In this document: positions 1 through 46,839 of the stretch, one piece after another | Numbering within the stretch: position 1 is the first letter of the stretch | Layout of the letters: every line of letters begins with the position of its first letter | Assembly (NCBI GenBank): GCA_019828565.1 | Contig: JAHDYR010000001.1 | Span: 1 to 64,000, forward strand | Direction of reading: 5' to 3' | Source: Carpediemonas membranifera BICM | Lineage: Eukaryota > Protista > Fornicata | DNA length: 64,000 nt | Program-made: the position numbers and the translations under genes | Notes under the pieces: generated by a model | What the model was told of the DNA's origin: nothing | Database searches by the model: none | What the model saw: only the letters and a program-made list of their open reading frames with translations

Positions 1-3000
1 AAACTGATTGGCTGGCTGCTTTAAATCATACCCGAGGGATCTAAAGGTATACTGTATACGCAGAGGTCAAATGCATCAACTGATTGACTTATGAAATGAC
101 GGTTCTGCCACTCACCGGAGTACAGCCGAAGCATCCTAGATTAATGAGGTGCCAGCTGCCAGCGCTCGCGATTAAGCCAATCTCCAGCGATAGCGTTCCT
201 GGCGCTCGTTGCGCGGGTCGTGCCCACATTTTCGAAAGTGGTCGCTGGAAAGAAATCACTGAGCTGCGGATCGCCCCGGACATGATACTGTGGCTTAATC
301 GCCGGGCTCTAGTATGCACTATACGCAGAGGCGCAGGAGTCCCCCAAATGCATCCAGCTGATTCGGCTCTGCGCAAAATGCATGTCGTTTTCTTGCCTCG
401 CGCTTGCCTGAGCTGCGGCATGCGAGATCGCTGCGTGCCTGGCTGGCGCTCGCTGGTCGACCAATCTCCGGCGAGTAAGCGTTCCAACTCGTTGCGCTGG
501 GTCGTGCCCGACACCGAAGTGGAATGCCCGCGGAATCACGAGCCTAGGATGCCCGATAATGTCGACTTAATCGCCAGGGCTCTGGTATGCTATGCCGGGC
601 GCCGGAGTCAAATCGCATCAACGATTGACGCGAAGGCAAAACTGTTTTGGTTTCTGCCACTCACCCGCCTGAGACTGGTGGCATCCCTGAATCGCTAGTG
701 CCTAGCTGGCGCTCGCGGTCGCCATCTTTCCGGCGATAAAGCGTTCAACTCGTTACTGGGTCGTGCCATTTTCGAAGTGGTCATACCTGGAAATCGCGAG
801 CTGGGATGCGGACTAATGTCTGCCTTAATCGCCAGGGCTCCTGGTATACTATGCGCAGGGCGCTGAAGTCAAGTCATCTGGCTGATTGAGGCTTATAGAA
901 ATGGCGTTTTGCGGTTTCTGCCCACTCACCCGCCACCAGGAGCTACAGTCAGCACATCCCTAGATCGCTGGTGCCTGGCTGCTGGCGCTCGCGATTAAAG
1001 CCAATCTCCGGCGATAGCGTTCAGCTCGTTGCGCTGGGTCGTGCTTTCGCATTTTGCCGAGTGGTCGCCCTGGAATCACGAGCAGCGGAATGCGGACTAG
1101 TCCATGTCTGGCCCAATCGCCAGGGCTCCTATAGCCATACTATGCGCTTAAGGAGTGAAGCGAGTCCCAAATGCATCCAACTGGTTGGCTCATGAAAATG
1201 GCGCGATTTCTGCCACTCACCCGCCTGAGGCCTGATCAGTCTGACTTTTATCCCCTAGATCGCTGGTGCCTGTAGCCCAAGCGCTCGCGGTCAGCCAAAT
1301 CTCCGGCGGTGGCGTTCCAACTCGTTGCGCACCAGGGTCGTGCCGATGCTGCGAGAGTGAGGTCGCCCTGAGAAATCGACGGCGGGATGCTTGGAACTAA
1401 TGTCTGAAACGGCTGTCGCCAGCGACTCCTGGTATAGCTCTTGCCACGCAAGGGCTGGGAGTCCTAAAATGCATCAGCTGATTGACTTATGAGAAATGAG
1501 CATTTTGCAGTTTCTGCCACTCTCACCCGCCTGGGGAGCTACCGATCGGCGCATCCCTGGATCGCTGGTGCCGCCCGCTGGCGCTCGCGTCAGCCAATCT
1601 GCGGCGATTAGCGTTCCAGCTCGTTGCGCTGGGTCGTTGCCATTTGTTTCCGAAAGTTGGTCGCCCACGAAAATCACATGGCTTCGGGATCACTCGGACT
1701 AATGTCTGGCTTGATCTTCAGGGCTCCTAGTATACTATACGCAGAGAGCGCGGAGGTCCCCAAATGCCATCCAGCTGAGTTGACTTGTGAGAAAGTGGCA
1801 TTTTTGATTTCTGCCTCTCACCGCCTAGCAGGGCTACGGTCAGCGCGTCCCCTAGATCTCACGCTGGTGCCTGGCTGGCGCTCGCCTTGTAAAGCGAAAT
1901 CTCCCGGCGATGGCGTTCAACTCGTTTGCGCTGGAGTCGTGCCCATTTACCGAGAGAGTGGTCGCTACAGAAATCACGAGAGAAACTGGGATGCCCCGGA
2001 CTAATCAATGCGTAGGCAATCGCCAGGGCTCCTAGTATACGCTGTCACGCAAGGGCGCAGAGTCCCCAAATGCATCAGCTGATTGACTTATGAAAATGAC
2101 GTTTTGATTTCTGCCACTCGCACGCCCGCCTGCCAAGGGCGCTGCAGTCGGCACATCCCTAGATCGCTGGTGCCTAGCTAAGCGCTCGCGATTCAGCCAA
2201 TCTCTGCCGGCGATGGCGTTCCCAGCTCGTTGCGCTGGGTCGTGCGGGCATGAGCGAGAAGTGGTCGCCCCTGGAAATCACGAGGCTGGGATGCCCCGGA
2301 CTAATGTCTGCGAAGCTTAATCGCCGGGGCTCGTATACTATACGCAGAGCGCCCGGAGTCCCCAAAATGCGTCAGCGATTTGACCTATGAAAATGCCGTG
2401 TCTGCCCTGCGCCGCCACTAGGGAGCCTGATCGTCAGCATCCCTAGATCGCTGAGTGCCCTGCTGCGCGCTCGCGCGCGGTCATATCTCCCACGGCGATG
2501 GCGTTGGCGCTCGTTGCGCTTCAGGTGCGTGCCCGACTCGAAAGTATGGTCGCCCTGAAATCGCGAGCTGGGATGCGGACTATATCGGAGGCTAGCAGCG
2601 TACTCGCGCCGGGATACTATGCGCAGGAGGCGCGGAGTCGGTAGCCATCAGCTGATTGACTTATGAAAATGACATTTTTGATTTCTGCCACTCACCCGCC
2701 TGGGGAGCTACGGTCGAGCGCATCCCTAAGATCATGAGTGCCTAGCTGGCGCTCGCGATTAAGCCAATCTCCGGCGATGGCGTTCAGCTCGTTGCGCTGG
2801 GTCGTGCCCACTCGAAAGTGGTCGCCTGAAATCACGAGCTGGGATAGCACGAGACTAATGTCTGGCTTGTCGCCAGGGCTCTAGTATACTATGCGCAGAG
2901 GCGCGGAGTCCCCCCAAATGCATCAACTGATTGACTTATGAAAATGACACTGATTTCTGCCACTCACCCGCCTGGGGAGCTACAGTCGGCACATCCCCTG

Positions 3001-6000
3001 AATCGCTGGTGCTAGCTGGCGCTCGCGATTAAACAATCTCCCGGCGATGGCGATTCCAGCGCTCGTTGCGCTGGGTCGGTAGCGCGCATTTTTCGAGAGT
3101 GGTCGCACCGAAAATCACGAAGGCGGGATGCTATGGACTGTCTGGCTTAGAAATCGCCAGGGCTCCTAGTATATTATACTTGCCAGGCGCGGAGTCTAGG
3201 ATGCATCAGCTGCGATTGAAGCTTATGAAAAGTGAGCATTTTGATTTTCACGCCCTCACTGCCGCACTGGGAGCTTCAGTCGGCACATCCCTAGATCGCT
3301 TCGAATTGCCCATAGCCTAGCTGTCGCGGTCAGCCAATCTCCCGGCGATAGCGTTCCAACTCGTTGCGCTGGGTCGTGCCCATTTTTCGAAAGTGGTCGC
3401 CCCTGAAATCACGAGCTGGGATGCCCCGGACTAATGTCTGGCTTAATCGCCAGGGCTCCTAGTATACTATACGCAGAGGCGCGGAGTCCCCCCAAATGCA
3501 TCAACTGATTGACTTGTAGAAATGACATTTTTGATTTCTGCCACTCACCCGCCTGGGGAGCTGCAGTCGGCACATCCCTAGATCGCTGAGTGCCTAGCTA
3601 GCGCTCGCGGTCAAGCCAATCTCCGGCGATGGCGTTCCAGCTCGTTGCGCTGGGTCGTGCCCATTTTTCGAAAGTGGTCGCCCCTGAAATCACGAGCTGG
3701 GATGCCCCGGACTAATGTCTGGCTTAATCGCCAGGGCTCCTAGTATACTATACGCAGAGGCGCGGAGTCCCCCAAATGCATCAACTGATTGACTTATGAG
3801 AAATGACATTTTTGATTTCTGCCACTCACCCGCCTGGGGAGCTACAGTCGGCACATCCCCTAGATCGCTGAGTGCCTAGCTAGCGCTCGCGGTCAAGCCA
3901 ATCTCCCGGCGATAGCGTTCCAACTCGTTGCGCTGGGTCGTGCCCATTTTTCGAAAGTGGTCGCCCCTGGAAATCACGAGCTGGGATGCTTTGGACTAAT
4001 GTCTGGCTTAATCGCCAGGGCTCCTAGTATACTATGCGCAGGGGCGCGGAGTCCCCCAAATGCATCAACTGATTGACTTGTAGAAATGACATTTTTGATT
4101 TCTGCCACTCACCCGCCTGGGGAGCTACAGTCGGCACATCCCTAGATCGCTGAGTGCCTAGCTAGCGCTCGCGGTCAAGCCAATCTCCCGGCGTGGCGTT
4201 CCAACTCGTTGCGCTGGGTCGTGCCCATTTTTCGAAAGTGGTCGCCCCTGAAATCACGAGCTGGGATGCCCCGGACTAATGTCACGAAGCCCAATCGCCA
4301 GGGCTCCTAGTATACTATACGCAGAGGCGCGGAGTCCCCCAAATGCATCAACTGATTGACTTATGAGAAATGACATTTTTTGATTTCTGCCACTCACCCG
4401 CCTGGGGAGGCTACAGTCGGCACATCCCTAGATCGCTAGTGCCTAGCTAGCGCTCGCGGTCAAGCCAATCTCCCGGCGATGGCGTTCAACTCGTTGCGCT
4501 GGGTCGTGCCCATTTTTCGAAAGTGGTCGCCCCTGAAATCACGAGCTGGGATGCCCCGGACTAATAATACGGCTTAATCGCCAGAACTCCTAGTATACTA
4601 TACGCAGAGGCGCGGAGTCCCCCAAATGCATCAACTGATTGACTTATGAAATGACATTTTTGATTTCTGCCACTCACCCGCCGCAGGGGCTACAGTCGGC
4701 ACATCCCTAGATCGCTAGTGCCTAGCTAGCGCTCGCGGTCAAGCCAATCTCCCGGCGATGGCGTTCCAACTCGTTGCGCTGGGTCGTGCCCATTTTTCGA
4801 AAGTGGTCGCCCCTGAAATCACGAGCTGGGATGCCCCCGGACTAATGTCTGGCTTAATCGCCAGGGCTCCTAGTATACTATACGCAGAGGCGCGGAGTCC
4901 CCCAAATGCATCAACTGATTGACTTATGAGAAATGACATTTTTGATTTCTGCCACTCCACCCGCCTGGGGAGGCTACAGTCGGCACATCCCTAGATCGCT
5001 GAGTGCCTGGCTAGCGCTCGCGGTCAAGCCAATCTCCCGGCGATAGCGTTCCAACTCGTTGCGCTGGGTCGTGCCCATTTTCGAAAGTGGTCGCCCCTGA
5101 AATCACGAGCTGGGATGCCCCGGACTAATGTCTGGCTTAATCGCCAGGGCTCCTAGTATACTATACGCAGGGCGCGGAGTCCCCCCAAATGCATCAACTG
5201 ATTGACTTATGAGAAATGACATTTTTGAGTTTCTGCCCACTCACCCGCCTGGGGAGCTACAGTCGGCACATCCCCTAGATCGCTGGTGCCTAGCTAGCGC
5301 TCGCGATTAAGCCAATCTCCCGGCGATAGCGTTCAACTCGTTGCGCTGGGTCGTGCCCATTTTTCGAAAGTGGTCGCCCCTGAAATCACGAGCTGGGATG
5401 CCCCGGACTAATGTCAAAGCTTAATCCTTGGGGCTCCTAGTATACTATACGCAGAGGCGCGGAGTCCCCCAAATGCATCAACTGATTGACTTATGAGAAA
5501 TGACATTTTTGATTTCTGCCACTCACCCGCCTGGGGAGCTACAGTCGGCACATCCCCTAGATCGCTAGTGCCTAGCTAGCGCTCGCGGTCAAGCCAATCT
5601 CCCGGCGATAGCGTTCCAACTCGTTGCGCTGGGTCGTGCCCATTTTTTCGAAAGTGGTCGCCCCTGAAATCACGAGCTGGGATGCCCCGGACTAATGTCT
5701 GGCTTAATCGCCAGGGCTCCTAGTATACTATACGCAGAGGCGCGGAGTCCCCCCAAATGCATCAACTGATTGACTTATGAGAAATGACATTTTTTGATTT
5801 CTGCCACTCACCCGCCTGGGGAGCTGCAGTCGGCACATCCCTAGATCGCTGGTGCCTAGCTAGCGCTCGCGGTCAAAGCCAATCTCCCGGCGATGGCGTT
5901 CCAACTCGTTGCGCTGGGTCGTGCCCATTTTTCGAAAGTGGTCGCCCCTGGAAATCACGAGCTGGGATGCCCCGGACTAATGTCTGGCTTAATCGCCGGG

Positions 6001-9000
6001 GCTCTAGTATACTATACGCAGAGGCGCGGAGTCCCCCAAATGCATCAACTGATTGACTTATGAGAAATGACATTTTTGAGTTTCTGCCACTCACCCGCCT
6101 GGGGAGCTACAGTCGGCACATCCCTAGATCGCTGGTGCCTAGCTAGCGCTCGCGGTCAAGCCAATCTCCCGGCGATAGCGTTCCAACTCGTTGCGCTGGG
6201 TCGTGCCCATTTTTCGAAAGTGGTCGCCCCTGAAATCACGAGCTGGGATGCCCCGGACTAATGTCTGGCTTAATCGCCAGGGCTCCTAGTATACTATACG
6301 CAGAGGCGCGGAGTCCCCCCAAATGCATCAACTGATTGACTTATGAAAATGACATTTTTGATTTCTGCCACTCACCCGCCTGGGGAGCTACAGTCGGCAC
6401 ATCCCTAGATCGCTAGTGCCTAGCTAGCGCTCGCGGTCAAGCCAATCTCCCGGCGATAGCGTTCCAACTCGTTGCGCTGGGTCGTGCCCATTTTTCGAAA
6501 GTGGTCGCCCCTGAAATCACGAGCTGGGATGCCCCGGACTAATGTCTGGCTTAATCGCCAGGGCTCCTAGTATACTATACGCAGAGGCGCGGAGTCCCCC
6601 CAAATGCATCAACTGATTGACTTATGAAAATGACATTTTTGATTTCTGCCACTCACCCGCCTGGGGAGCTACAGTCGGCACATCCCTAGATCGCTAGTGC
6701 CTAGCTAGCGCTCGCGGTCGTAATCTCCCGGCGATAGCGTTCCAACTCGTTGCGCTGGGTCGTGCCCATTTTTCGAAAGTGGTCGCCCCTGAAATCACGA
6801 GCTGGGATGCCCCGGACTAATGTCTGGCTTAATCGCCAGGGCTCCTAGTATACTATACGCAGAGGCGCGGAGTCCCCCCAAATGCATCAACTGATTGACT
6901 TATGAAAATGACATTTTTGATTTCTGCCACTCACCCGCCTGGGGAGCTACAGTCGGCACATCCCTAGATCGCTAGTGCCTAGCTAGCGCTCGCGGTCAAG
7001 CCAATCTCCCGGCGATAGCGTTCCAACTCGTTGCGCTGGGTCGTGCCCATTTTTCGAAAGTGGTCGCCCCTGAAATCACGAGCTGGGATGCCCCGGACTA
7101 ATGTCTGGCTTAATCGCCAGGGCTCCTAGTATACTATACGCAGAGGCGCGGAGTCCCCCCAAATGCATCAACTGATTGACTTATGAAAATGACATTTTTG
7201 ATTTCTGCCACTCACCCGCCTGGGGAGCTACAGTCGGCACATCCCTAGATCGCTAGTGCCTAGCTAGCGCTCGCGGTCAAAGCCAATCTCCCGGCGATAG
7301 CGTTCCAACTCGTTGCGCTGGGTCGTGCCCATTTTTTCGAAAGTGGTCGCCCCTGAAATCACGAGCTGGGATGCCCCGGACTAATGTCTGGCTTAATCGC
7401 CAGGGCTCCTAGTATACTATACGCAGAGGCGCGGAGTCCCCCAAATGCATCAACTGATTGACTTATGAAAATGACATTTTTGATTTCTGCCACTCACCCG
7501 CCTGGGGAGCTACAGTCGGCACATCCCCTAGATCGCTAGTGCCTAGCTAGCGCTCGCGATTAAACCAATCTCCCGGCGATAGCGTTCCAACTCGTTGCGC
7601 TGGGTCGTGCCCATTTTTCGAAAGTGGTCGCCCCTGAAATCACGAGCTGGGATGCCCCGGACTAATGTCTGGCTTAATCGCCAGGGCTCCTAGTATACTA
7701 TACGCAGAGGCGCGGAGTCCCCCAAATGCATCAACTGATTGACTTATGAAAATGACATTTTTTTGATTTCTGCCACTCACCCGCCTGGGGGAGCTACAGT
7801 CGGCACATCCCTAGATCGCTGAGTGCCTAGCTAGCGCTCGCGGTCAAAGCCAATCTCCCGGCGATAGCGTTCCAACTCGTTGCGCTGGGTCGTGCCCATT
7901 TTTCGAAAGTGGTCGCCCCTGAAATCACGAGCTGGGATGCCCCGGACTAATGTCTGGCTTAATCGCCAGGGCTCCTAGTATACTATACGCAGAGGCGCGG
8001 AGTCCCCCAAATGCATCAACTGATTGACTTATGAAAATGACATTTTTTTGATTTCTGCCACTCACCCGCCTGGGGGAGCTACAGTCGGCACATCCCCTAG
8101 ATCGCTAGTGCCTAGCTAGCGCTCGCGATTAAGCCAATCTCCCGGCGATAGCGTTCCAACTCGTTGCGCTGGGTCGTGCCCATTTTTCGAAAGTGGTCGC
8201 CCCTGAAATCACGAGCTGGGATGCCCCGGACTAATGTCTGGCTTAATCGCCAGGGCTCTAGTATACTATACGCAGAGGCGCGGAGTCCCCCAAATGCATC
8301 AACTGATTGACTTATGAAAATGACATTTTTTTGATTTCTGCCACTCACCCGCCTGGGGAGCTACAGTCGGCACATCCCCTAGATCGCTGAGTGCCTAGCT
8401 GGCGCTCGCGATTAAGCCAATCTCCCGGCGATAGCGTTCCAACTCGTTGCGCTGGGTCGTGCCCATTTTTCGAAAGTGGTCGCCCCTGAAATCACGAGCT
8501 GGGATGCCCCGGACTAATGTCTGGCTTAATCGCCAGGGCTCCTAGTATACTATACGCAGAGGCGCGGAGTCCCCAAATGCATCAACTGATTGACTTATGA
8601 AATGACATTTTTGATTTCTGCCACTCACCCGCCTGGGGGAGCTACAGTCGGCACATCCCTAGATCGCTGGTGCCTGGCTAGCGCTCGCGATTAAGCCAAT
8701 CTCCCGGCGATAGCGTTCCAACTCGTTGCGCTGGGTCGTGCCCATTTTTTTCGAAAGTGGTCGCCCCTGAAATCACGAGCTGGGATGCCCCGGACTAATG
8801 TCTGGCTTAATCGCCAGGGGCTCCTAGTATACTATACGCAGAGGCGCGGAGTCCCCCAAATGCATCAACTGATTGACTTATGAAATGACATTTTTGATTT
8901 CTGCCACTCACCCGCCTGGGGAGCTACAGTCGGCACATCCCCTAGATCGCTGAGTGCCTAGCTAGCGCTCGCGGTCAAGCCAATCTCCCGGCGATAGCGT

Positions 9001-12000
9001 TCCAACTCGTTGCGCTGGGTCGTGCCCATTTTTTTCGAAAGTGGTCGCCCCTGAAATCACGAGCTGGGATGCCCCGGACTAATGTCTGGCTTAATCGCCA
9101 GGGCTCCTAGTATACTATACGCAGAGGCGCGGAGTCCCCCAAATGCATCAACTGATTGACTTATGAAAATGACATTTTTTTGATTTCTGCCACTCACCCG
9201 CCTGGGGAGCTACAGTCGGCACATCCCCTAGATCGCTAGTGCCTAGCTAGCGCTCGCGATTAAAGCCAATCTCCCGGCGATAGCGTTCCAACTCGTTGCG
9301 CTGGGTCGTGCCCATTTTTCGAAAGTGGTCGCCCCTGAAATCACGAGCTGGGATGCCCCGGACTAATGTCTGGCTTAATCGCCAGGGCTCCTAGTATACT
9401 ATACGCAGAGGCGCGGAGTCCCCAAATGCATCAACTGATTGACTTATGAAAATGACATTTTTTTGATTTCTGCCACTCACCCGCCTGGGGAGCTACAGTC
9501 GGCACATCCCTAGATCGCTGGTGCCTAGCTAGCGCTCGCGATTAAGCCAATCTCCCGGCGATAGCGTTCCAGCTCGTTGCGCTGGGTCGTGCCCATTTTT
9601 TTCGAAAGTGGTCGCCCCTGAAATCACGAGCTGGGATGCCCCGGACTAATGTCTGGCTTAATCGCCAGGGCTCCTAGTATACTATACGCAGAGGCGCGGA
9701 GTCCCCCAAATGCATCAACTGATTGACTTATGAAAATGACATTTTTTTGATTTCTGCCACTCACCCGCCTGGGGAGCTACAGTCGGCACATCCCTAGATC
9801 GCTAGTGCCTAGCTAGCGCTCGCGGTCAAGCCAATCTCCCGGCGATAGCGTTCCAACTCGTTGCGCTGGGTCGTGCCCATTTTTTCGAAAGTGGTCGCCC
9901 CTGAAATCACGAGCTGGGATGCCCCGGACTAATGTCTGGCTTAATCGCCAGGGGCTCCTAGTATACTATACGCAGAGGCGCGGAGTCCCCCAAATGCATC
10001 AACTGATTGACTTATGAAAATGACATTTTTTTGATTTCTGCCACTCACCCGCCTGGGGAGCTACAGTCGGCACATCCCCTAGATCGCTGGTGCCTAGCTA
10101 GCGCTCGCGATTAAGCCAATCTCCCGGCGATAGCGTTCCAACTCGTTGCGCTGGGTCGTGCCCATTTTTCGAAAGTGGTCGCCCCTGGGAAATCACGAGG
10201 CTGGGATGCCCCGGACTAATGTCTGGCTTAATCGCCAGGGGCTCCTAGTATACTATACGCAGAGGCGCGGAGTCCCCCAAATGCATCAACTGATTGACTT
10301 ATGAAATGACATTTTTGATTTCTGCCACTCACCCGCCTGGGGAGCTACAGTCGGCACATCCCTAGATCGCTGGTGCCTAGCTAGCGCTCGCGATTAAGCC
10401 AATCTCCCGGCGATAGCGTTCCAACTCGTTGCGCTGGGTCGTGCCCATTTTTCGAAAGTGGTCGCCCCTGAAATCACGAGCTGGGATGCCCCGGACTAAT
10501 GTCTGGCTTAATCGCCAGGGGCTCCTAGTATACTATACGCAGAGGCGCGGAGTCCCCCAAATGCATCAACTGATTGACTTATGAAAATGACATTTTTGAT
10601 TTCTGCCACTCACCCGCCTGGGGAGCTACAGTCGGCACATCCCTAGATCGCTGAGTGCCTAGCTAGCGCTCGCGGTCAAAGCCAATCTCCCGGCGATAGC
10701 GTTCCAACTCGTTGCGCTGGGTCGTGCCCATTTTTTTCGAAAGTGGTCGCCCCTGAAATCACGAGCTGGGATGCCCCGGACTAATGTCTGGCTTAATCGC
10801 CAGGGCTCCTAGTATACTATACGCAGAGGCGCGGAGTCCCCCAAATGCATCAACTGATTGACTTATGAAATGACATTTTTGATTTCTGCCACTCACCCGC
10901 CTGGGGAGCTACAGTCGGCACATCCCTAGATCGCTAGTGCCTAGCTAGCGCTCGCGGTCAAGCCAATCTCCCGGCGATAGCGTTCCAACTCGTTGCGCTG
11001 GGTCGTGCCCATTTTTTCGAAAGTGGTCGCCCCTGAAATCACGAGCTGGGATGCCCCGGACTAATGTCTGGCTTAATCGCCAGGGCTCCTAGTATACTAT
11101 ACGCAGAGGCGCGGAGTCCCCCAAATGCATCAACTGATTGACTTATGAAAATGACATTTTTTTGATTTCTGCCACTCACCCGCCTGGGGAGCTACAGTCG
11201 GCACATCCCTAGATCGCTAGTGCCTAGCTAGCGCTCGCGATTAAGCCAATCTCCCGGCGATAGCGTTCCAACTCGTTGCGCTGGGTCGTGCCCATTTTTT
11301 CGAAAGTGGTCGCCCCTGAAATCACGAGCTGGGATGCCCCGGACTAATGTCTGGCTTAATCGCCAGGGCTCTAGTATACTATACGCAGAGGCGCGGAGTC
11401 CCCCAAATGCATCAACTGATTGACTTATGAAAATGACATTTTTTTGATTTCTGCCACTCACCCGCCTGGGGAGCTACAGTCGGCACATCCCTAGATCGCT
11501 GAGTGCCTAGCTAGCGCTCGCGGTCAAAGCCAATCTCCCGGCGATAGCGTTCCAACTCGTTGCGCTGGGTCGTGCCCATTTTTTTCGAAAGTGGTCGCCC
11601 CTGAAATCACGAGCTGGGATGCCCCGGACTAATGTCTGGCTTAATCGCCAGGGGCTCCTAGTATACTATACGCAGAGGCGCGGAGTCCCCCAAATGCATC
11701 AACTGATTGACTTATGAAAATGACATTTTTTTGATTTCTGCCCACTCACCCGCCTGGGGAGCTACAGTCGGCACATCCCTAGATCGCTAGTGCCTAGCTA
11801 GCGCTCGCGATTAAGCCAATCTCCCGGCGATAGCGTTCCAACTCGTTGCGCTGGGTCGTGCCCATTTTTTTCGAAAGTGGTCGCCCCTGAAATCACGAGC
11901 TGGGATGCCCCGGACTAATGTCTGGCTTAATCGCCAGGGCTCCTAGTATACTATACGCAGAGGCGCGGAGTCCCCCAAATGCATCAACTGATTGACTTAT

Positions 12001-21000: not shown

Positions 21001-24000
21001 ACTAATGTCTGGCTTAATCGCCAGGGCTCCTAGTATACTATACGCAGAGGCGCGGAGTCCCCCAAATGCATCAACTGATTGACTTATGAAAATGACATTT
21101 TTTTGATTTCTGCCACTCACCCGCCTGGGGAGCTACAGTCGGCACATCCCCTAGATCGCTAGTGCCTAGCTAGCGCTCGCGATTAAGCCAATCTCCCGGC
21201 GATAGCGTTCCAACTCGTTGCGCTGGGTCGTGCCCATTTTTTTCGAAAGTGGTCGCCCCTGAAATCACGAGCTGGGATGCCCCGGACTAATGTCTGGCTT
21301 AATCGCCAGGGCTCCTAGTATACTATACGCAGAGGCGCGGAGTCCCCCAAATGCATCAACTGATTGACTTATGAAAAATGACATTTTTTTGATTTCTGCC
21401 ACTCACCCGCCTGGGGAGCTACAGTCGGCACATCCCCTAGATCGCTAGTGCCTAGCTAGCGCTCGCGATTAAGCCAATCTCCCGGCGATAGCGTTCCAAC
21501 TCGTTGCGCTGGGTCGTGCCCATTTTTTTCGAAAGTGGTCGCCCCTGAAATCACGAGCTGGGATGCCCCGGACTAATGTCTGGCTTAATCGCCAGGGCTC
21601 CTAGTATACTATACGCAGAGGCGCGGAGTCCCCCCAAATGCATCAACTGATTGACTTATGAAAAATGACATTTTTTTGATTTCTGCCACTCACCCGCCTG
21701 GGGAGCTACAGTCGGCACATCCCCTAGATCGCTAGTGCCTAGCTAGCGCTCGCGATTAAGCCAATCTCCCGGCGATAGCGTTCCAACTCGTTGCGCTGGG
21801 TCGTGCCCATTTTTTTCGAAAGTGGTCGCCCCTGAAATCACGAGCTGGGATGCCCCGGACTAATGTCTGGCTTAATCGCCAGGGCTCCTAGTATACTATA
21901 CGCAGAGGCGCGGAGTCCCCCAAATGCATCAACTGATTGACTTATGAAAAATGACATTTTTTTGATTTCTGCCACTCACCCGCCTGGGGAGCTACAGTCG
22001 GCACATCCCCTAGATCGCTAGTGCCTAGCTAGCGCTCGCGATTAAGCCAATCTCCCGGCGATAGCGTTCCAACTCGTTGCGCTGGGTCGTGCCCATTTTT
22101 TTCGAAAGTGGTCGCCCCTGAAATCACGAGCTGGGATGCCCCGGACTAATGTCTGGCTTAATCGCCAGGGCTCCTAGTATACTATACGCAGAGGCGCGGA
22201 GTCCCCCAAATGCATCAACTGATTGACTTATGAAAAATGACATTTTTTTGATTTCTGCCACTCACCCGCCTGGGGAGCTACAGTCGGCACATCCCCTAGA
22301 TCGCTAGTGCCTAGCTAGCGCTCGCGATTAAGCCAATCTCCCGGCGATAGCGTTCCAACTCGTTGCGCTGGGTCGTGCCCATTTTTTTCGAAAGTGGTCG
22401 CCCCTGAAATCACGAGCTGGGATGCCCCGGACTAATGTCTGGCTTAATCGCCAGGGCTCCTAGTATACTATACGCAGAGGCGCGGAGTCCCCCAAATGCA
22501 TCAACTGATTGACTTATGAAAAATGACATTTTTTTGATTTCTGCCACTCACCCGCCTGGGGAGCTACAGTCGGCACATCCCCTAGATCGCTAGTGCCTAG
22601 CTAGCGCTCGCGATTAAGCCAATCTCCCGGCGATAGCGTTCCAACTCGTTGCGCTGGGTCGTGCCCATTTTTTTCGAAAGTGGTCGCCCCTGAAATCACG
22701 AGCTGGGATGCCCCGGACTAATGTCTGGCTTAATCGCCAGGGCTCCTAGTATACTATACGCAGAGGCGCGGAGTCCCCCCAAATGCATCAACTGATTGAC
22801 TTATGAAAATGACATTTTTTTGATTTCTGCCACTCACCCGCCTGGGGAGCTACAGTCGGCACATCCCCTAGATCGCTAGTGCCTAGCTAGCGCTCGCGAT
22901 TAAGCCAATCTCCCGGCGATAGCGTTCCAACTCGTTGCGCTGGGTCGTGCCCATTTTTTTCGAAAGTGGTCGCCCCTGAAATCACGAGCTGGGATGCCCC
23001 GGACTAATGTCTGGCTTAATCGCCAGGGCTCCTAGTATAATATACGCAGAGGCGCGGAGTCCCCCAAATGCATCAACTGATTGACTTATGAAAATGACAT
23101 TTTTTTGATTTCTGCCACTCACCCGCCTGGGGAGCTACAGTCGGCACATCCCCTAGATCGCTAGTGCCTAGCTAGCGCTCGCGATTAAGCCAATCTCCCG
23201 GCGATAGCGTTCCAACTCGTTGCGCTGGGTCGTGCCCATTTTTTTCGAAAGTGGTCGCCCCTGAAATCACGAGCTGGGATGCCCCGGACTAATGTCTGGC
23301 TTAATCGCCAGGGCTCCTAGTATAATATACGCAGAGGCGCGGAGTCCCCCAAATGCATCAACTGATTGACTTATGAAAATGACATTTTTGATTTCTGCCA
23401 CTCACCCGCCTGGGGAGCTACAGTCGGCACATCCCCTAGATCGCTAGTGCCTAGCTAGCGCTCGCGATTAAGCCAATCTCCCGGCGATAGCGTTCCAACT
23501 CGTTGCGCTGGGTCGTGCCCATTTTTTTCGAAAGTGGTCGCCCCTGAAATCACGAGCTGGGATGCCCCGGACTAATGTCTGGCTTAATCGCCAGGGCTCC
23601 TAGTATAATATACGCAGAGGCGCGGAGTCCCCCCAAATGCATCAACTGATTGACTTATGAAAATGACATTTTTGGATTTCTGCCACTCACCCGCCTGGGG
23701 AGCTACAGTCGGCACATCCCCTAGATCGCTAGTGCCTAGCTAGCGCTCGCGATTAAGCCAATCTCCCGGCGATAGCGTTCCAACTCGTTGCGCTGGGTCG
23801 TGCCCATTTTTCGAAAGTGGTCGCCCCTGAAATCACGAGCTGGGATGCCCCGGACTAATGTCTGGCTTAATCGCCAGGGCTCCTAGTATACTATACGCAG
23901 AGGCGCGGAGTCCCCCCAAATGCATCAACTGATTGACTTATGAAAATGACATTTTTGATTTCTGCCACTCACCCGCCTGGGGAGCTACAGTCGGCACATC

Positions 24001-27000
24001 CCCTAGATCGCTAGTGCCTAGCTAGCGCTCGCGATTAAGCCAATCTCCCGGCGATAGCGTTCCAACTCGTTGCGCTGGGTCGTGCCCATTTTTTTCGAAA
24101 GTGGTCGCCCCTGAAATCACGAGCTGGGATGCCCCGGACTAATGTCTGGCTTAATCGCCAGGGCTCCTAGTATAATATACGCAGAGGCGCGGAGTCCCCC
24201 AAATGCATCAACTGATTGACTTATGAAAATGACATTTTTTTGATTTCTGCCACTCACCCGCCTGGGGAGCTACAGTCGGCACATCCCCTAGATCGCTAGT
24301 GCCTAGCTAGCGCTCGCGATTAAGCCAATCTCCCGGCGATAGCGTTCCAACTCGTTGCGCTGGGTCGTGCCCATTTTTTTCGAAAGTGGTCGCCCCTGAA
24401 ATCACGAGCTGGGATGCCCCGGACTAATGTCTGGCTTAATCGCCAGGGCTCCTAGTATACTATACGCAGAGGCGCGGAGTCCCCCAAATGCATCAACTGA
24501 TTGACTTATGAAAATGACATTTTTGATTTCTGCCACTCACCCGCCTGGGGAGCTACAGTCGGCACATCCCCTAGATCGCTAGTGCCTAGCTAGCGCTCGC
24601 GATTAAGCCAATCTCCCGGCGATAGCGTTCCAACTCGTTGCGCTGGGTCGTGCCCATTTTTTTCGAAAGTGGTCGCCCCTGAAATCACGAGCTGGGATGC
24701 CCCGGACTAATGTCTGGCTTAATCGCCAGGGCTCCTAGTATACTATACGCAGAGGCGCGGAGTCCCCCAAATGCATCAACTGATTGACTTTATGAAAATG
24801 ACATTTTTGATTTCTGCCACTCACCCGCCTGGGGAGCTACAGTCGGCACATCCCCTAGATCGCTAGTGCCTAGCTAGCGCTCGCGATTAAGCCAATCTCC
24901 CGGCGATAGCGTTCCAACTCGTTGCGCTGGGTCGTGCCCATTTTTTTCGAAAGTGGTCGCCCCTGAAATCACGAGCTGGGATGCCCCGGACTAATGTCTG
25001 GCTTAATCGCCAGGGCTCCTAGTATAAATATACGCAGAGGCGCGGAGTCCCCCCAAATGCATCAACTGATTGACTTATGAAAATGACATTTTTGATTTCT
25101 GCCACTCACCCGCCTGGGGAGCTACAGTCGGCACATCCCCTAGATCGCTAGTGCCTAGCTAGCGCTCGCGATTAAGCCAATCTCCCGGCGATAGCGTTCC
25201 AACTCGTTGCGCTGGGTCGTGCCCATTTTTTTCGAAAGTGGTCGCCCCTGAAATCACGAGCTGGGATGCCCCGGACTAATGTCTGGCTTAATCGCCAGGG
25301 CTCCTAGTATACTATACGCAGAGGCGCGGAGTCCCCCAAATGCATCAACTGATTGACTTATGAAAATGACATTTTTTTGATTTCTGCCACTCACCCGCCT
25401 GGGGAGCTACAGTCGGCACATCCCCTAGATCGCTAGTGCCTAGCTAGCGCTCGCGATTAAGCCAATCTCCCGGCGATAGCGTTCCAACTCGTTGCGCTGG
25501 GTCGTGCCCATTTTTTTCGAAAGTGGTCGCTCCTGAAATCACGAGCTGGGATGCCCCGGACTAATGTCTGGCTTAATCGCCAGGGCTCCTAGTATACTAT
25601 ACGCAGAGGCGCGGAGTCCCCCAAATGCATCAACTGATTGACTTATGAAAATGACATTTTTTTGATTTCTGCCACTCACCCGCCTGGGGAGCTACAGTCG
25701 GCACATCCCCTAGATCGCTAGTGCCTAGCTAGCGCTCGCGATTAAGCCAATCTCCCGGCGATAGCGTTCCAACTCGTTGCGCTGGGTCGTGCCCATTTTT
25801 TTCGAAAGTGGTCGCCCCTGAAATCACGAGCTGGGATGCCCCGGACTAATGTCTGGCTTAATCGCCAGGGCTCCTAGTATACTATACGCAGAGGCGCGGA
25901 GTCCCCCAAATGCATCAACTGATTGACTTATGAAAATGACATTTTTGATTTCTGCCACTCACCCGCCTGGGGAGCTACAGTCGGCACATCCCCTAGATCG
26001 CTAGTGCCTAGCTAGCGCTCGCGATTAAGCCAATCTCCCGGCGATAGCGTTCCAACTCGTTGCGCTGGGTCGTGCCCATTTTTTTCGAAAGTGGTCGCCC
26101 CTGAAATCACGAGCTGGGATGCCCCGGACTAATGTCTGGCTTAATCGCCAGGGCTCCTAGTATACTATACGCAGAGGCGCGGAGTCCCCCCAAATGCATC
26201 AACTGATTGACTTATGAAAATGACATTTTTGATTTCTGCCACTCACCCGCCTGGGGAGCTACAGTCGGCACATCCCCTAGATCGCTAGTGCCTAGCTAGC
26301 GCTCGCGATTAAGCCAATCTCCCGGCGATAGCGTTCCAACTCGTTGCGCTGGGTCGTGCCCATTTTTTTCGAAAGTGGTCGCCCCTGAAATCACGAGCTG
26401 GGATGCCCCGGACTAATGTCTGGCTTAATCGCCAGGGCTCCTAGTATACTATACGCAGAGGCGCGGAGTCCCCCCAAATGCATCAACTGATTGACTTATG
26501 AAAATGACATTTTTGATTTCTGCCACTCACCCGCCTGGGGAGCTACAGTCGGCACATCCCCTAGATCGCTAGTGCCTAGCTAGCGCTCGCGATTAAGCCA
26601 ATCTCCCGGCGATAGCGTTCCAACTCGTTGCGCTGGGTCGTGCCCATTTTTTTCGAAAGTGGTCGCCCCTGAAATCACGAGCTGGGATGCCCCGGACTAA
26701 TGTCTGGCTTAATCGCCAGGGCTCCTAGTATACTATACGCAGAGGCGCGGAGTCCCCCCAAATGCATCAACTGATTGACTTATGAAAATGACATTTTTTT
26801 GATTTCTGCCACTCACCCGCCTGGGGAGCTACAGTCGGCACATCCCCTAGATCGCTAGTGCCTAGCTAGCGCTCGCGATTAAGCCAATCTCCCGGCGATA
26901 GCGTTCCAACTCGTTGCGCTGGGTCGTGCCCATTTTTTTCGAAAGTGGTCGCCCCTGAAATCACGAGCTGGGATGCCCCGGACTAATGTCTGGCTTAATC

Positions 27001-30000
27001 GCCAGGGCTCCTAGTATACTATACGCAGAGGCGCGGAGTCCCCCAAATGCATCAACTGATTGACTTATGAAAATGACATTTTTGATTTCTGCCACTCACC
27101 CGCCTGGGGAGCTACAGTCGGCACATCCCCTAGATCGCTAGTGCCTAGCTAGCGCTCGCGATTAAGCCAATCTCCCGGCGATAGCGTTCCAACTCGTTGC
27201 GCTGGGTCGTGCCCATTTTTTTCGAAAGTGGTCGCCCCTGAAATCACGAGCTGGGATGCCCCGGACTAATGTCTGGCTTAATCGCCAGGGCTCCTAGTAT
27301 AATATACGCAGAGGCGCGGAGTCCCCCAAATGCATCAACTGATTGACTTATGAAAATGACATTTTTTTGATTTCTGCCACTCACCCGCCTGGGGAGCTAC
27401 AGTCGGCACATCCCCTAGATCGCTAGTGCCTAGCTAGCGCTCGCGATTAAGCCAATCTCCCGGCGATAGCGTTCCAACTCGTTGCGCTGGGTCGTGCCCA
27501 TTTATTTTTCGAAAGTGGTCGCCCCTGAAATCACGAGCTGGGATGCCCCGGACTAATGTCTGGCTTAATCGCCAGGGCTCCTAGTATAATATACGCAGAG
27601 GCGCGGAGTCCCCCAAATGCATCAACTGATTGACTTATGAAAATGACATTTTTGATTTCTGCCACTCACCCGCCTGGGGAGCTACAGTCGGCACATCCCC
27701 TAGATCGCTAGTGCCTAGCTAGCGCTCGCGATTAAGCCAATCTCCCGGCGATAGCGTTCCAACTCGTTGCGCTGGGTCGTGCCCATTTTTCGAAAGTGGT
27801 CGCCCCTGAAATCACGAGCTGAGATGCCCCGGACTAATGTCTGGCTTAATCGCCAGGGCTCCTAGTATACTATACGCAGAGGCGCGGAGTCCCCCCAAAT
27901 GCATCAACTGATTGACTTATGAAAATGACATTTTTGATTTCTGCCACTCACCCGCCTGGGGAGCTACAGTCGGCACATCCCCTAGATCGCTAGTGCCTAG
28001 CTAGCGCTCGCGATTAAGCCAATCTCCCGGCGATAGCGTTCCAACTCGTTGCGCTGGGTCGTGCCCATTTTTCGAAAGTGGTCGCCCCTGAAATCACGAG
28101 CTGAGATGCCCCGGACTAATGTCTGGCTTAATCGCCAGGGCTCCTAGTATACTATACGCAGAGGCGCGGAGTCCCCCCAAATGCATCAACTGATTGACTT
28201 ATGAAAATGACATTTTTGATTTCTGCCACTCACCCGCCTGGGGAGCTACAGTCGGCACATCCCCTAGATCGCTAGTGCCTAGCTAGCGCTCGCGATTAAG
28301 CCAATCTCCCGGCGATAGCGTTCCAACTCGTTGCGCTGGGTCGTGCCCATTTTTCGAAAGTGGTCGCCCCTGAAATCACGAGCTGGGATGCCCCGGACTA
28401 ATGTCTGGCTTAATCGCCAGGGCTCCTAGTATAATATACGCAGAGGCGCGGAGTCCCCCAAATGCATCAACTGATTGACTTATGAAAATGACATTTTTGA
28501 TTTCTGCCACTCACCCGCCTGGGGAGCTACAGTCGGCACATCCCCTAGATCGCTAGTGCCTAGCTAGCGCTCGCGATTAAGCCAATCTCCCGGCGATAGC
28601 GTTCCAACTCGTTGCGCTGGGTCGTGCCCATTTTTCGAAAGTGGTCGCCCCTGAAATCACGAGCTGGGATGCCCCGGACTAATGTCTGGCTTAATCGCCA
28701 GGGCTCCTAGTATACTATACGCAGAGGCGCGGAGTCCCCCAAATGCATCAACTGATTGACTTATGAAAATGACATTTTTGATTTCTGCCACTCACCCGCC
28801 TGGGGAGCTACAGTCGGCACATCCCCTAGATCGCTAGTGCCTAGCTAGCGCTCGCGATTAAGCCAATCTCCCGGCGATAGCGTTCCAACTCGTTGCGCTG
28901 GGTCGTGCCCATTTTTCGAAAGTGGTCGCCCCTGAAATCACGAGCTGGGATGCCCCGGACTAATGTCTGGCTTAATCGCCAGGGCTCCTAGTATAATATA
29001 CGCAGAGGCGCGGAGTCCCCCAAATGCATCAACTGATTGACTTATGAAAATGACATTTTTGATTTCTGCCACTCACCCGCCTGGGGAGCTACAGTCGGCA
29101 CATCCCCTAGATCGCTAGTGCCTAGCTAGCGCTCGCGATTAAGCCAATCTCCCGGCGATAGCGTTCCAACTCGTTGCGCTGGGTCGTGCCCATTTTTCGA
29201 AAGTGGTCGCCCCTGAAATCACGAGCTGGGATGCCCCGGACTAATGTCTGGCTTAATCGCCAGGGCTCCTAGTATAATATACGCAGAGGCGCGGAGTCCC
29301 CCCAAATGCATCAACTGATTGACTTATGAAAATGACATTTTTGATTTCTGCCACTCACCCGCCTGGGGAGCTACAGTCGGCACATCCCCTAGATCGCTAG
29401 TGCCTAGCTAGCGCTCGCGATTAAGCCAATCTCCCGGCGATAGCGTTCCAACTCGTTGCGCTGGGTCGTGCCCATTTTTCGAAAGTGGTCGCCCCTGAAA
29501 TCACGAGCTGGGATGCCCCGGACTAATGTCTGGCTTAATCGCCAGGGCTCCTAGTATAATATACGCAGAGGCGCGGAGTCCCCCCAAATGCATCAACTGA
29601 TTGACTTATGAAAATGACATTTTTGATTTCTGCCACTCACCCGCCTGGGGAGCTACAGTCGGCACATCCCCTAGATCGCTAGTGCCTAGCTAGCGCTCGC
29701 GATTAAGCCAATCTCCCGGCGATAGCGTTCCAACTCGTTGCGCTGGGTCGTGCCCATTTTTCGAAAGTGGTCGCCCCTGAAATCACGAGCTGAGATGCCC
29801 CGGACTAATGTCTGGCTTAATCGCCAGGGCTCCTAGTATACTATACGCAGAGGCGCGGAGTCCCCCCAAATGCATCAACTGATTGACTTATGAAAATGAC
29901 ATTTTTGATTTCTGCCACTCACCCGCCTGGGGAGCTACAGTCGGCACATCCCCTAGATCGCTAGTGCCTAGCTAGCGCTCGCGATTAAGCCAATCTCCCG

Positions 30001-31278
30001 GCGATAGCGTTCCAACTCGTTGCGCTGGGTCGTGCCCATTTTTCGAAAGTGGTCGCCCCTGAAATCACGAGCTGGGATGCCCCGGACTAATGTCTGGCTT
30101 AATCGCCAGGGCTCCTAGTATAATATACGCAGAGGCGCGGAGTCCCCCAAATGCATCAACTGATTGACTTATGAAAATGACATTTTTGATTTCTGCCACT
30201 CACCCGCCTGGGGAGCTACAGTCGGCACATCCCCTAGATCGCTAGTGCCTAGCTAGCGCTCGCGATTAAGCCAATCTCCCGGCGATAGCGTTCCAACTCG
30301 TTGCGCTGGGTCGTGCCCATTTTTCGAAAGTGGTCGCCCCTGAAATCACGAGCTGGGATGCCCCGGACTAATGTCTGGCTTAATCGCCAGGGCTCCTAGT
30401 ATAATATACGCAGAGGCGCGGAGTCCCCCAAATGCATCAACTGATTGACTTATGAAAATGACATTTTTGATTTCTGCCACTCACCCGCCTGGGGAGCTAC
30501 AGTCGGCACATCCCCTAGATCGCTAGTGCCTAGCTAGCGCTCGCGATTAAGCCAATCTCCCGGCGATAGCGTTCCAACTCGTTGCGCTGGGTCGTGCCCA
30601 TTTTTCGAAAGTGGTCGCCCCTGAAATCACGAGCTGAGATGCCCCGGACTAATGTCTGGCTTAATCGCCAGGGCTCCTAGTATACTATACGCAGAGGCGC
30701 GGAGTCCCCCAAATGCATCAACTGATTGACTTATGAAAATGACATTTTTGATTTCTGCCACTCACCCGCCTGGGGAGCTACAGTCGGCACATCCCCTAGA
30801 TCGCTAGTGCCTAGCTAGCGCTCGCGATTAAGCCAATCTCCCGGCGATAGCGTTCCAACTCGTTGCGCTGGGTCGTGCCCATTTTTCGAAAGTGGTCGCC
30901 CCTGAAATCACGAGCTGGGATGCCCCGGACTAATGTCTGGCTTAATCGCCAGGGCTCCTAGTATAATATACGCAGAGGCGCGGAGTCCCCCAAATGCATC
31001 AACTGATTGACTTATGAAAATGACATTTTTGATTTCTGCCACTCACCCGCCTGGGGAGCTACAGTCGGCACATCCCCTAGATCGCTAGTGCCTAGCTAGC
31101 GCTCGCGATTAAGCCAATCTCCCGGCGATAGCGTTCCAACTCGTTGCGCTGGGTCGTGCCCATTTTTCGAAAGTGGTCGCCCCTGAAATCACGAGCTGGG
31201 ATGCCCCGGACTAATGTCTGGCTTAATCGCCAGGGCTCCTAGTATAATATACGCAGAGGCGCGGAGTCCCCCAAATGC

Positions 31279-31314
31279 ATCAACTGATTGACTTATGAAA
31301 ATGACATTTTTGAT
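31279..31314 (+). ncRNA. Candidate non-canonical minimal type-I hammerhead-like motif, one per satellite unit (example copy)
   Basis: ATCAA-CTGATTGA-CTTAT-GAAA-ATGACAT-TT-TTGAT. Stem I ATCAA/TTGAT, palindromic stem III and UH are in the correct register. However, the CUGANGA box has one extra nucleotide and there is no stem II pair. Confidence 0.25.
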
Positions 31315-31385
31315 TTCTGCCACTCACCCGCCTGGGGAGCTACAGTCGGCACATCCCCTAGATCGCTAGTGCCTAGCTAGCGCTC

Positions 31386-31511
31386 GCGATTAAGCCAATC
31401 TCCCGGCGATAGCGTTCCAACTCGTTGCGCTGGGTCGTGCCCATTTTTCGAAAGTGGTCGCCCCTGAAATCACGAGCTGAGATGCCCCGGACTAATGTCT
31501 GGCTTAATCGC
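31386..31511. repeat. Perfect 12-bp inverted repeat inside the satellite unit (example copy)
   Basis: GCGATTAAGCCA (31386-31397) is the reverse complement of TGGCTTAATCGC (31500-31511), with a 102-bp spacer. Confidence 0.95.
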
Positions 31512-32066
31512 CAGGGCTCCTAGTATACTATACGCAGAGGCGCGGAGTCCCCCCAAATGCATCAACTGATTGACTTATGAAAATGACATTTTTGATTTCT
31601 GCCACTCACCCGCCTGGGGAGCTACAGTCGGCACATCCCCTAGATCGCTAGTGCCTAGCTAGCGCTCGCGATTAAGCTCCTAATAGACTATACAGCTGCC
31701 CCGTATGGCTGCATGACAACTACGTAGGTCTGCGGCCCCTCGGTGGTGGGCACCGAACGCCCGGTCAGTAAGGGCTCTGGTTGAATATGGTTAGAGGTTG
31801 GGCAGTAATCAGTTGATGAATCGATCCCGCATGTTTGAAGAAAATGGCCGAGGACAAGCCGGCCACCGTCTGCTCGCGAGCTCCGAGCAACTGGCGCCGG
31901 GAGTCACCTGGCAGCCGAATTTCGAGTCCGAGGCCCGTCGGCCGACACGTAAATTCACTCCCCCCCGTTCAGGTTTGGCTAGTCAGCCTAGGCGTCTGCT
32001 GGGTCAGACCAAAACGTGGTCGAGCTTATAACAGATATGTATAGATCGAAAAATCGCGTTCTTATA

Positions 32067-32139
32067 GGTCTGCTAGATCAGTCGGTAGATCGTTGGTCTG
32101 ATAAGCCAAAGGTCGTGGGTTCGAGCCCCACGTGGACCA
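32067..32139 (+). tRNA. tRNA-Ile, anticodon GAT
   Basis: Cloverleaf folded by hand: acceptor GGTCTGC/GTGGACC, D stem GATC/GATC, anticodon stem TTGGT/GCCAA with loop CT-GAT-AA, T arm GTGGG-TTCGAGC-CCCAC, discriminator A. No encoded CCA. Confidence 0.95.

Positions 32140-40109: not shown

Positions 40110-40142
<33 letters not shown>

Positions 40143-46806: not shown

Positions 46807-46839
<33 letters not shown>

Follow-up and report, generated by a model that had tools for sequence, protein, structure and literature searches.

A probable lineage-specific satellite DNA with a maintained foldback domain in Carpediemonas membranifera

The window, a stretch of 64,000 nucleotides that begins at the start of contig C2 in the Carpediemonas membranifera assembly (69 contigs, 24.2 Mb in total), opens with a long tandem array on its forward strand. 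TRF reported a single array at 161-31677 with a period of 285, 111 copies and 95% matches, and segmentation with BLAST gave 112 head-to-tail units from base 68 to 31661, followed by a 16-bp stub up to 31677. Both results bear out the tandem array of more than 31 kb, built from a 281-bp unit, that an earlier sequence-only reading of this DNA had described. Units of exactly 281 bp are confined to the right edge, where the sequence is well resolved; the others measure 279-287 bp, and the differences lie mainly in the lengths of T, C and A runs. The monomer at 31099..31379 (+) served as reference, and positions q1 to q281 are numbered from its first base. The final unit (31662..31677, +) is truncated to q1-q16 and forms a sharp boundary, at which the flanking DNA is no more similar to the unit than shuffled sequences are. 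The idea that old, diverged units persist in the flanks, with a terminus that skips the hairpin, was rejected after local alignment scores on both sides matched those of shuffles. Beyond the boundary lie a dispersed repeat of ~290 bp (31721..32009, +) and a tRNA-Ile(GAU) gene (32067..32139, +), the latter 390 bp from the array. Copies of the dispersed repeat occur on C1, C9, C36, C31, C3, C63 and C68, where they stand ~50-250 bp upstream of tRNA genes.

Sequence quality collapses where the array is cut by the contig end. The terminal units at the contig start (1..3300, +) are ridden with indels: compared with the edge unit they show 77-90% identity and 10-29 gap openings each, and their gap load, at 13-29 per unit, compares with 0-8 in dispersed copies that have truly diverged. 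The published assembly was built from MinION R9.4 and Illumina data, and these 3.3 kb are most likely unpolished Nanopore long-read sequence rather than old units. The rest of the array (3301..31677, +) is homogeneous, with ~100 units in the 279-287 bp range, 98 of them full-length. At 3.3-6 kb the units are 94-97% identical to the edge unit, and the figure climbs to 100% at 28-31.6 kb. Substitution variants occur in local clusters, and the last seven units hint at a three-unit higher-order pattern. The ~112 near-identical units proposed from the sequence alone can be kept as a count, but near-identity fails in the first 3.3 kb.

The units have no coding capacity, as had been proposed: the consensus contains stops in all six frames, its longest open stretch is 47 codons, and the sole open reading frame of at least 150 amino acids (84-698) lies inside the error-ridden array end. 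Two compositional features noted in the first reading proved ordinary. CpG, described as abundant, has an observed/expected ratio of 0.97 in the unit, which is the level of the flanking genes (1.04). The palindromes that had been listed do exist, but their density is that of chance: those of at least 6 bp cover 60 bases, compared to 60.1 +/- 18 in dinucleotide shuffles, and those of at least 8 bp cover 41, compared to 20.6 +/- 13 (p = 0.08). We also discarded a gain of palindromes specific to the array, since the C2 consensus and the consensus of the dispersed copies are nearly equal in palindromic bases (60 versus 58) and in whole-unit folding energy (-91.6 versus -91.7 kcal/mol), and there is no excess over random substitutions either.

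We surveyed the family by counting two core 19-mers over the whole genome. A BLAST-type genome search missed one array, on contig C1, and all C2 units; a profile search recovered them and could not list weaker relatives, so the census relies on the 19-mer counts. Mapping the unit in this way, as the first reading had suggested, placed three assembled blocks of a 281-283-bp monomer among the 69 contigs, at C2:1-31677, C22:1-6749 (24 units) and C1:838431-849271 (38 units), together with ~20 dispersed partial single copies among the matches listed. The assembled satellite totals ~49 kb, or 0.2% of the genome. The 10.8-kb C1 array is fully spanned, has unique flanks on both sides and sits 0.84 Mb into a contig of 1.87 Mb. 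The C22 block carries the same variant as C2 and is oriented as expected for the opposite side of one unspanned array; the two blocks are compatible with being two sides of a single array. The family occupies two or three loci. The apical-hairpin sequence occurs 113 times in the genome, every time inside this family. In a search of metagenome contigs, one core 19-mer had 0 matches and the other had 20 chance matches, none of them homologous by the unit model. Units of the C1 array are 99.4% identical to their own consensus, and those in the interior of the C2 array are 97-100% identical to the edge unit, whereas the C2 and C1 consensus sequences agree at 237 of 282 positions (84%); units are thus more alike within arrays than between them, the pattern of concerted evolution. 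The longest identical runs measure 19-20 bp, and none of the conserved blocks is longer than expected by chance at 16% divergence.

About half of the monomer is taken up by a quasi-palindromic foldback domain of ~130 bp (31103..31232). In agreement with the original description, it is bounded by a perfect 12-bp inverted repeat, with left arm GCGATTAAGCCA (31105..31116) and right arm TGGCTTAATCGC (31219..31230) 102 bp apart, and fold prediction places the nested stems TCGTG/CACGA and CCATTTT/AAAGTGG at 31154..31194. These elements vary within the family. The sixth base of the right arm is G in most relatives, leaving an inverted repeat of 11/12 there, and of 13 family members only 3 form pair 59-94 of the nested stems. 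In 20-24 of the C2 units the left arm reads GCGGTCAAGCCA with no compensating change in the right arm, and the DNA fold of these units falls to z -0.5.

The claim that the unit is highly self-complementary applies to this domain and not to the monomer as a whole. Folded as DNA, the C2-type domain reaches -25.5 kcal/mol (z -3.1; 1 of 200 shuffles is as good), and the z values of the C1 type, a C11 copy and a C63 copy are -3.8, -3.0 and -3.3, respectively. Both strands of the domain fold well, with z of -2.8 to -4.6, or -3.2 to -4.6 with RNA parameters. The whole unit, in contrast, folds no better than its shuffles on either strand (z -1.6), and the other half of the monomer has a z of -0.8. Two dispersed copies fold no better than shuffled sequences.

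Foldability of the domain has been retained as the family diverged. Three lineages, separated by differences at 15-22% of their sites, all keep the domain at about -26 kcal/mol; after 19-28 substitutions the observed stability is -25 to -28 kcal/mol, compared to -15 to -18 kcal/mol in type-matched sets of random substitutions (p <= 0.013 in 6/6 directed comparisons among these three lineages, which alone carry the signal). The other half of the monomer gave p values of 0.18-0.34 in the same test. The majority consensus of the family, at -23.5 kcal/mol, is less stable than the three lineages, which argues against the simple decay of a once-perfect palindrome. At the same time, the helices differ from lineage to lineage. 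Folding is as good on the minus strand as on the plus strand, so G-U pairs carry no strand signal, and the foldback appears to be kept at the level of DNA rather than as a strand-specific RNA. The importance first attached to self-complementarity is upheld in part, by the 130-bp domain, whose foldability persists across diverged subfamilies.

Taken together, these results make it probable that C. membranifera carries here a non-coding satellite that is specific to its lineage and has a maintained DNA quasi-palindrome. It is tandem, non-coding, homogenised and present at two or three loci, in keeping with the satellite among the identities first suggested for it. None of our tests showed that the array encodes an RNA or marks a centromere or the end of a chromosome; arrays of TTAGGG, TAGGG or TTTAGGG were absent across the whole assembly, and telomere-type repeats were absent from the 19 contig ends read. 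Taken alone, the finding is an undescribed but ordinary young satellite. Such arrays would grow, shrink and homogenise via unequal exchange and replication slippage, and would yield no gene product. Foldability might persist because foldback-prone variants are preferentially amplified through fork stalling and template switching, because quasi-palindrome correction keeps the arms matched, or because chromatin proteins bind the non-B DNA.

The arrays could also be a centromere-associated or heterochromatin-nucleating satellite that provides the CenH3 platforms of two chromosomes, with other satellites serving the other chromosomes and the foldback supplying the non-B DNA often found in such repeats. 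We consider this unlikely, although several observations point toward it. The arrays combine length and homogeneity with variants peculiar to each locus, the C1 array sits mid-contig, and DNA-level maintenance of the foldback fits published dyad symmetries of centromeric satellites (PMC5889037), though short dyads in this unit do not exceed chance. The genome paper reported a candidate CenpA, expected centromeres among unassembled repeats and considered both telomeres and centromeres to be probably absent from the assembly (PMC8516963). Additionally, 40 kb of the right flank of the C1 array contain at least 7 pol remnants of Ty3/gypsy elements, including one with a chromodomain integrase; none were found in the left flank. 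Because Ty3/gypsy elements are common throughout the genome (1761 rough candidates), this cluster is weak evidence for a centromere. The family also forms only three blocks among 69 contigs, and in the C2 and C22 flanks ordinary genes and a tRNA gene come as close as 200-400 bp to the array, while 32 kb of this DNA yielded no pol remnants. Reports describe C. membranifera as lacking ORC/Cdc6 and most of the structural proteins of the kinetochore, and a broader version of this idea would have the arrays and the other single-locus satellites of the genome act as chromosome-specific centromeres, their maintained cruciform-prone domain being recognised by the reduced machinery for segregation or replication initiation. 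We consider that version improbable.

A mobile-element origin, in which the domain bounded by the inverted repeat was a MITE, a foldback transposon or a piece of some tRNA-targeting element and was tandemly amplified after insertion upstream of tRNA-Ile, is distinctly improbable. Among the matches listed, 5 of ~17 family loci lie less than 1 kb from a tRNA gene, tRNA-adjacent zones gather transposon remnants in this genome, and two dispersed fragments have flanks in common, as if carried within a larger repeat. However, the dispersed copies do not share termini: the 14 examined start anywhere from q40 to q268 and end anywhere from q21 to q281, at arbitrary unit positions. None of them starts or ends at the inverted repeat, no target-site duplications were seen in their flanks, and as a rule the flanks are not shared. 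Nor did we find similarity between the unit and the neighbouring repeats of the tRNA zones. We also rejected a related candidate, in which the unit would be a solo LTR of the form TG...CA, spaced by 5 bp, since the ends of the dispersed copies disagree.

One of the original suggestions, that the units are the many copies of a gene whose product is a structured RNA of a kind not yet described, is very improbable; a long hairpin cut into repeat-silencing small RNAs would be an example. The 130-nt domain does fold well with RNA parameters, and its stability is maintained across subfamilies. At gathering score, however, Rfam matched only the tRNA and nothing in the satellite, and at E <= 10 on both strands the only match was 12.7-bit noise to bxd_2. 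The same library detected U2 (6 copies) and 5S (5 on C23) away from the satellite at 57-96 bits. The strands fold equally well, and covariation does not exceed controls: with a fixed helix set, 89.1% of cells are paired, compared to 88.9% after shuffling; with an alternative fold, 18-36 of 500 shuffles attain the observed values; and compensatory changes on both sides of a pair show no significant excess over re-folded random mutants (p = 0.04-0.79). Helices vary between lineages, the outer stem is broken in at least 20 units of the C2 array, and, as noted above, conserved blocks do not outlast chance at this divergence. Two specific RNA candidates were likewise rejected. One was a U2-snRNA likeness, consisting of a GGCUUAAUC-like stretch, UAGUAU and, 64 nt on, AUUUUUG; the unit scores nothing against the U2 model, and the genuine U2 genes are located elsewhere in the genome. 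The other was a hammerhead at 31273-31320, which has CTGATTGA as its core instead of CUGAUGA, lacks helix II and matches no ribozyme model at E <= 10.

Finally, that a long-read assembler created the array or most of its length is scarcely credible: the raw-read error profile of the first 3.3 kb, the predominance of homopolymer lengths in mid-array variation and the stop at the contig end would fit such an expansion, but the family also forms the fully spanned C1 array with unique flanks, a second contig (C22) ends in the identical variant, substitution variants cluster spatially as in real arrays, and on the right the array stops at a clean, fully resolved boundary.

As a satellite, the family is new to the searchable literature, which holds no description of satellite DNA from Carpediemonas. 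Its strand-symmetric, maintained foldback is a clean example, on a small scale, of a satellite whose structure is preserved as DNA. Because C. membranifera is reported to lack ORC/Cdc6 and most kinetochore subunits, any candidate centromeric DNA would be a useful probe, and the arrays, with their exact coordinates, are concrete targets for CenH3 ChIP and FISH.

Several known systems resemble this satellite in part. Unit length and copy number fall in the range of tandem small-RNA arrays such as those of 5S rRNA, U snRNA and spliced-leader RNA, but the satellite scores nothing, unlike the 5S and U2 genes found elsewhere in this genome with 57-96 bits. Ribozyme-bearing satellites and retrozymes, such as newt satellite 2 and Schistosoma Sm-alpha, have ~300-bp monomers with internal structure. 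The Carpediemonas unit is similar in both respects, but hammerhead, twister, HDV-like and other ribozyme models were unmatched at E <= 10 on either strand. Human alpha satellite has a 171-bp monomer and locus-specific variants that arise by concerted evolution. The Carpediemonas family shares such variants, and a hint of higher-order organisation in the last seven C2 units, but does not have an array on every chromosome, higher-order structure over most of the array or a known binding box. Kasinathan and Henikoff (2018) described short dyad symmetries and non-B DNA in centromeric and pericentromeric satellites (PMC5889037). Like those, the Carpediemonas satellite has tandem monomers of a few hundred base pairs that are homogenised within arrays, and a part of the monomer with a predicted foldback or cruciform on both strands; unlike them, its dyads below 10 bp are at chance, the signal comes from one 130-bp quasi-palindrome, and the arrays amount to only ~49 kb of assembled DNA. 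Beetle satellites built from inverted sub-repeats or macro-dyads, as in Tribolium madens (PMC13081366), also have a monomer with large internal dyad symmetry, and a relation in sequence would not be expected. The beetle satellites extend over megabases and rank with the most abundant sequences in the genome, whereas the Carpediemonas family consists of three small arrays.

The array opens contig C2 of the Carpediemonas membranifera BICM assembly (G000), the window being the first 64 kb of this 500,663-bp contig. The whole assembly, built from MinION R9.4 and Illumina reads, holds 24,237,836 bases in 69 contigs. In size, contig number and GC content it agrees with the genome paper, which lists 24.2 Mb, 69 contigs and 57.1% GC in its Table 1 (PMC8516963). 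Eukaryotic ORFs flank the array, among them an NXF/TAP export factor, protein kinases, WD40 proteins and RNase P/MRP p29. Tandem Repeats Finder reported one array at 161-31677 (period 285, 111 copies, 95% matches), and segmentation by BLAST with the last full unit as query gave 112 units. All six frames of the unit consensus are interrupted by stops, the longest open stretch being 47 codons, in keeping with the sequence-only reading of the unit as non-coding; the sole array ORF of at least 150 codons (84-698) lies inside the indel-ridden first 3.3 kb.

Mapping the unit across the assembly, as that reading had proposed, placed blocks on contigs C2, C22 and C1, along with scattered pieces. A BLAST-type genome search found 24 units opening C22 on the minus strand and about 25 scattered partial matches. 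A sequence-only unit profile (R1) added an array inside C1 (838431-849271), whose 38 units of 283 bp share 99.4% identity with their own consensus and 84% with that of C2. Judged by whole-genome counts of two core 19-mers (177 and 173) and of a C2-type-specific 35-mer (113), the family appears to comprise these three blocks (~49 kb, 0.2% of the assembly) and the scattered pieces. The orientation of the C22 block fits reverse-complemented C22 and C2 as two sides of one unspanned array, and its units show the same set of variants as mid-array units of C2. Neither the satellite nor any terminal repeat occurs at the 19 other contig ends inspected, metagenome contigs yielded no true relative of either core 19-mer, and our literature search found no publication on Carpediemonas satellites. 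We conclude that this is a real, species-specific and previously undescribed satellite at two or three loci, in line with the earlier suggestion of a satellite.

A centromeric role for the satellite is possible but unsupported. The C1 array lies in mid-contig. Ty3/gypsy pol remnants number at least seven, one of them with a chromodomain, in the 40 kb on its right, whereas the 28 kb on its left contain none. This cluster (G000:C1:850258-889767; loci L050, L048, L051 and L052), which adjoins the array, includes an intact 850-codon pol and a chromodomain integrase. However, Ty3/gypsy elements are frequent throughout the genome, and the flanks of the C2 and C22 blocks are genic, with no pol remnants in 32 kb. 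As for a subtelomeric position, the whole assembly has no runs of TTAGGG, TAGGG or TTTAGGG, and the C1 array is clearly internal. In the genome paper, repeats figure only as masked sequence, and both centromeres and telomeres are expected to be missing from the assembly (PMC8516963).

The other proposal from the sequence, a multicopy gene for a structured RNA, found no support. At the gathering score, a tRNA is the sole Rfam match in the window. A search of three units on both strands at E<=10 returned only a 12.7-bit match to a fly lncRNA fragment, and no ribozyme, 5S, snRNA or other Rfam family. The library works on C. membranifera, since the same models detected U2 and 5S genes elsewhere in the genome, six of U2 at 57-68 bits and five of 5S at 89-96 bits. 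The 5S genes lie on one strand of contig C23 (G000:C23:8851-47168) at ~9.5-kb spacing, as if 5S belonged to a bigger tandem unit, which might be the rDNA repeat. In a 14-member alignment, the helices originally proposed pair 89.1% of cells compared to 88.9% in shuffles, 228 of 500 shuffles scoring as high. For an alternative fold containing a 14-bp central helix, 18-36 of 500 do as well, which falls inside the range of unconstrained related sequences in the covariation tool's own trials. When random mutants are re-folded for comparison, double-sided changes show no enrichment (p 0.04-0.79). The minus strand is no worse a folder than the plus strand, whether RNA or DNA parameters are used. Because the unit matches no Rfam family, covaries at the level of shuffles and folds equally on both strands, we see no support for a strand-specific structured RNA.

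Along the window array, BLAST identity to the last full unit is 100% at 28-31.6 kb, 97-99% in mid-array, where differences are mostly in the lengths of T, C and A runs, and 94-97% at 3.3-6 kb. In the first 3.3 kb it is 77-90%, with 10-29 gap openings per unit. The description of a homogeneous array of near-identical units is thus accurate from 3.3 kb on, but not for the gap-rich start. Genuinely diverged copies elsewhere in the genome (78-93% identity) have only 0-8 gaps, and for this reason we read the first 3.3 kb as probable unpolished long-read sequence at a contig end rather than old units. While neither the length of the window array nor its left 3.3 kb is reliable, an assembly artefact is unlikely as the origin of the repeat itself, since the C1 array is spanned completely and the same variant terminates two contigs. 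Substitution variants cluster by position along the C2 array; the left repeat arm, for example, takes its GCGGTCAAG form chiefly at 3.6-14.6 kb. In the last seven units (29693-31677), linked variants G/A at q109 and A/C at q164, counted along the reference monomer, alternate every three units, hinting at a nascent 843-bp higher-order repeat. On the C2 side the array ends sharply at q16; on the C22 side, where a WD40 gene lies ~200 bp away, its start at q130 is likewise sharp. Neither outer flank resembles the unit above shuffles.

The 14 dispersed copies that we read in detail span 86-303 bp (at most 1.08 units) and have both their ends at arbitrary points of a circularly permuted unit, as a rule with no common flanks and with no target duplications seen. 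One group is related to the C2 type (91-93% identical), a second to the C1 type (90-98%), and a third is ~80-88% identical to both. A tRNA gene lies within 1 kb of 5 of the ~17 family loci, the window array included (p ~5e-4 by our own estimate, even supposing 500 tRNA genes), and tRNA-adjacent zones accumulate transposon remnants. In the window, 390 bp separate the array from a tRNA-Ile (32067-32139; 65.4 bits, tRNA model), and within them a ~290-bp dispersed repeat (31721-32009) ends 57 bp upstream of the tRNA; on at least seven other contigs, copies of this repeat precede tRNA genes by ~50-250 bp. The 830 bp downstream hold two ~240-bp repeats (32197-32437 and 32614-32856), one of which occurs more than 40 times at 95-99% identity, with some copies paired ~3.7 kb apart, LTR-like. 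Between these repeats is a short AT-only tract (32431-32474; TAAAAATATAAA, 3.8 copies) in surroundings of 54-68% GC. The tRNA-Ile carries a GAU anticodon on a eukaryotic nuclear contig; the isoleucine anticodons usual in eukaryotes are AAU/IAU and UAU. At locus L011 (G000:C6:777314-778127), a tRNA-Gln sits between two oppositely oriented satellite pieces, 370 bp upstream and 41 bp downstream.

Elsewhere in the window, a protein-kinase gene is present in two tandem copies ~6.7 kb apart (38531-40645 and 45216-47342; 704 and 708 codons), which bear an identical 21-bp internal repeat (40151-40191 and 46848-46888). ORFs of 1000 codons (32968-35970), 883 codons (58447-61098) and, uninterrupted on the minus strand, 2694 codons (48198-56282) have no Pfam match.

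Much of the unit's apparent symmetry is at chance level. Palindromes of at least 6 bp cover 60 bases, where dinucleotide shuffles give 60.1 +/- 18 and flanking-gene tiles 62.8; those of at least 8 bp cover 41, compared to 20.6 +/- 13 (p 0.08). CpG observed/expected is 0.97 in the unit and 1.04 in the flank. Neither the dense palindromes nor the abundant CpG first remarked upon therefore distinguishes the unit. The 12-bp perfect inverted repeat is real, extending to 19 nt at 89% complementarity with its arms 102 bp apart. Self-complementarity is valid for one monomer half only, because the 130 bp bounded by this repeat fold as DNA with z -3.1, whereas the other 150 bp have z -0.8 and the whole unit z -1.6 on either strand.

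With DNA parameters, this 130-bp domain has a folding energy of -25.5 to -26.4 kcal/mol in the C2 and C1 types and also in a third lineage represented by single copies on contigs C11 and C63, although the three differ by 19-28 substitutions per 130 bp. When any of the three instead receives random substitutions matched in number and type, the outcome is -15 to -18 kcal/mol. In all six directed comparisons only 0-1.3% of such sets are more stable than the real descendant, a signal drawn from three lineages only. The other monomer half, at equal divergence (26 substitutions), gives p 0.18-0.34. The family majority consensus (-23.5 kcal/mol) is less stable than all three lineages, so independent decay of a once-perfect palindrome is a poor explanation. 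Partly different helices provide the stability: a perfect outer repeat in the C2 type; in the C1 type, a central helix of 11 perfect base pairs and a 14-bp outer repeat that has a single mismatch and whose two arms changed together; and an 8-bp apical stem in the C11/C63 type. With DNA parameters, neither two of the dispersed copies nor the GCGGTCAAG units of the C2 array fold better than shuffles. Foldability may have been kept by selection on non-B DNA, by preferential amplification of foldback-prone variants or by templated correction between the quasi-palindrome arms. We conclude that the sole feature taking this family beyond an ordinary satellite is a 130-bp DNA quasi-palindrome that has stayed foldable despite sequence drift.
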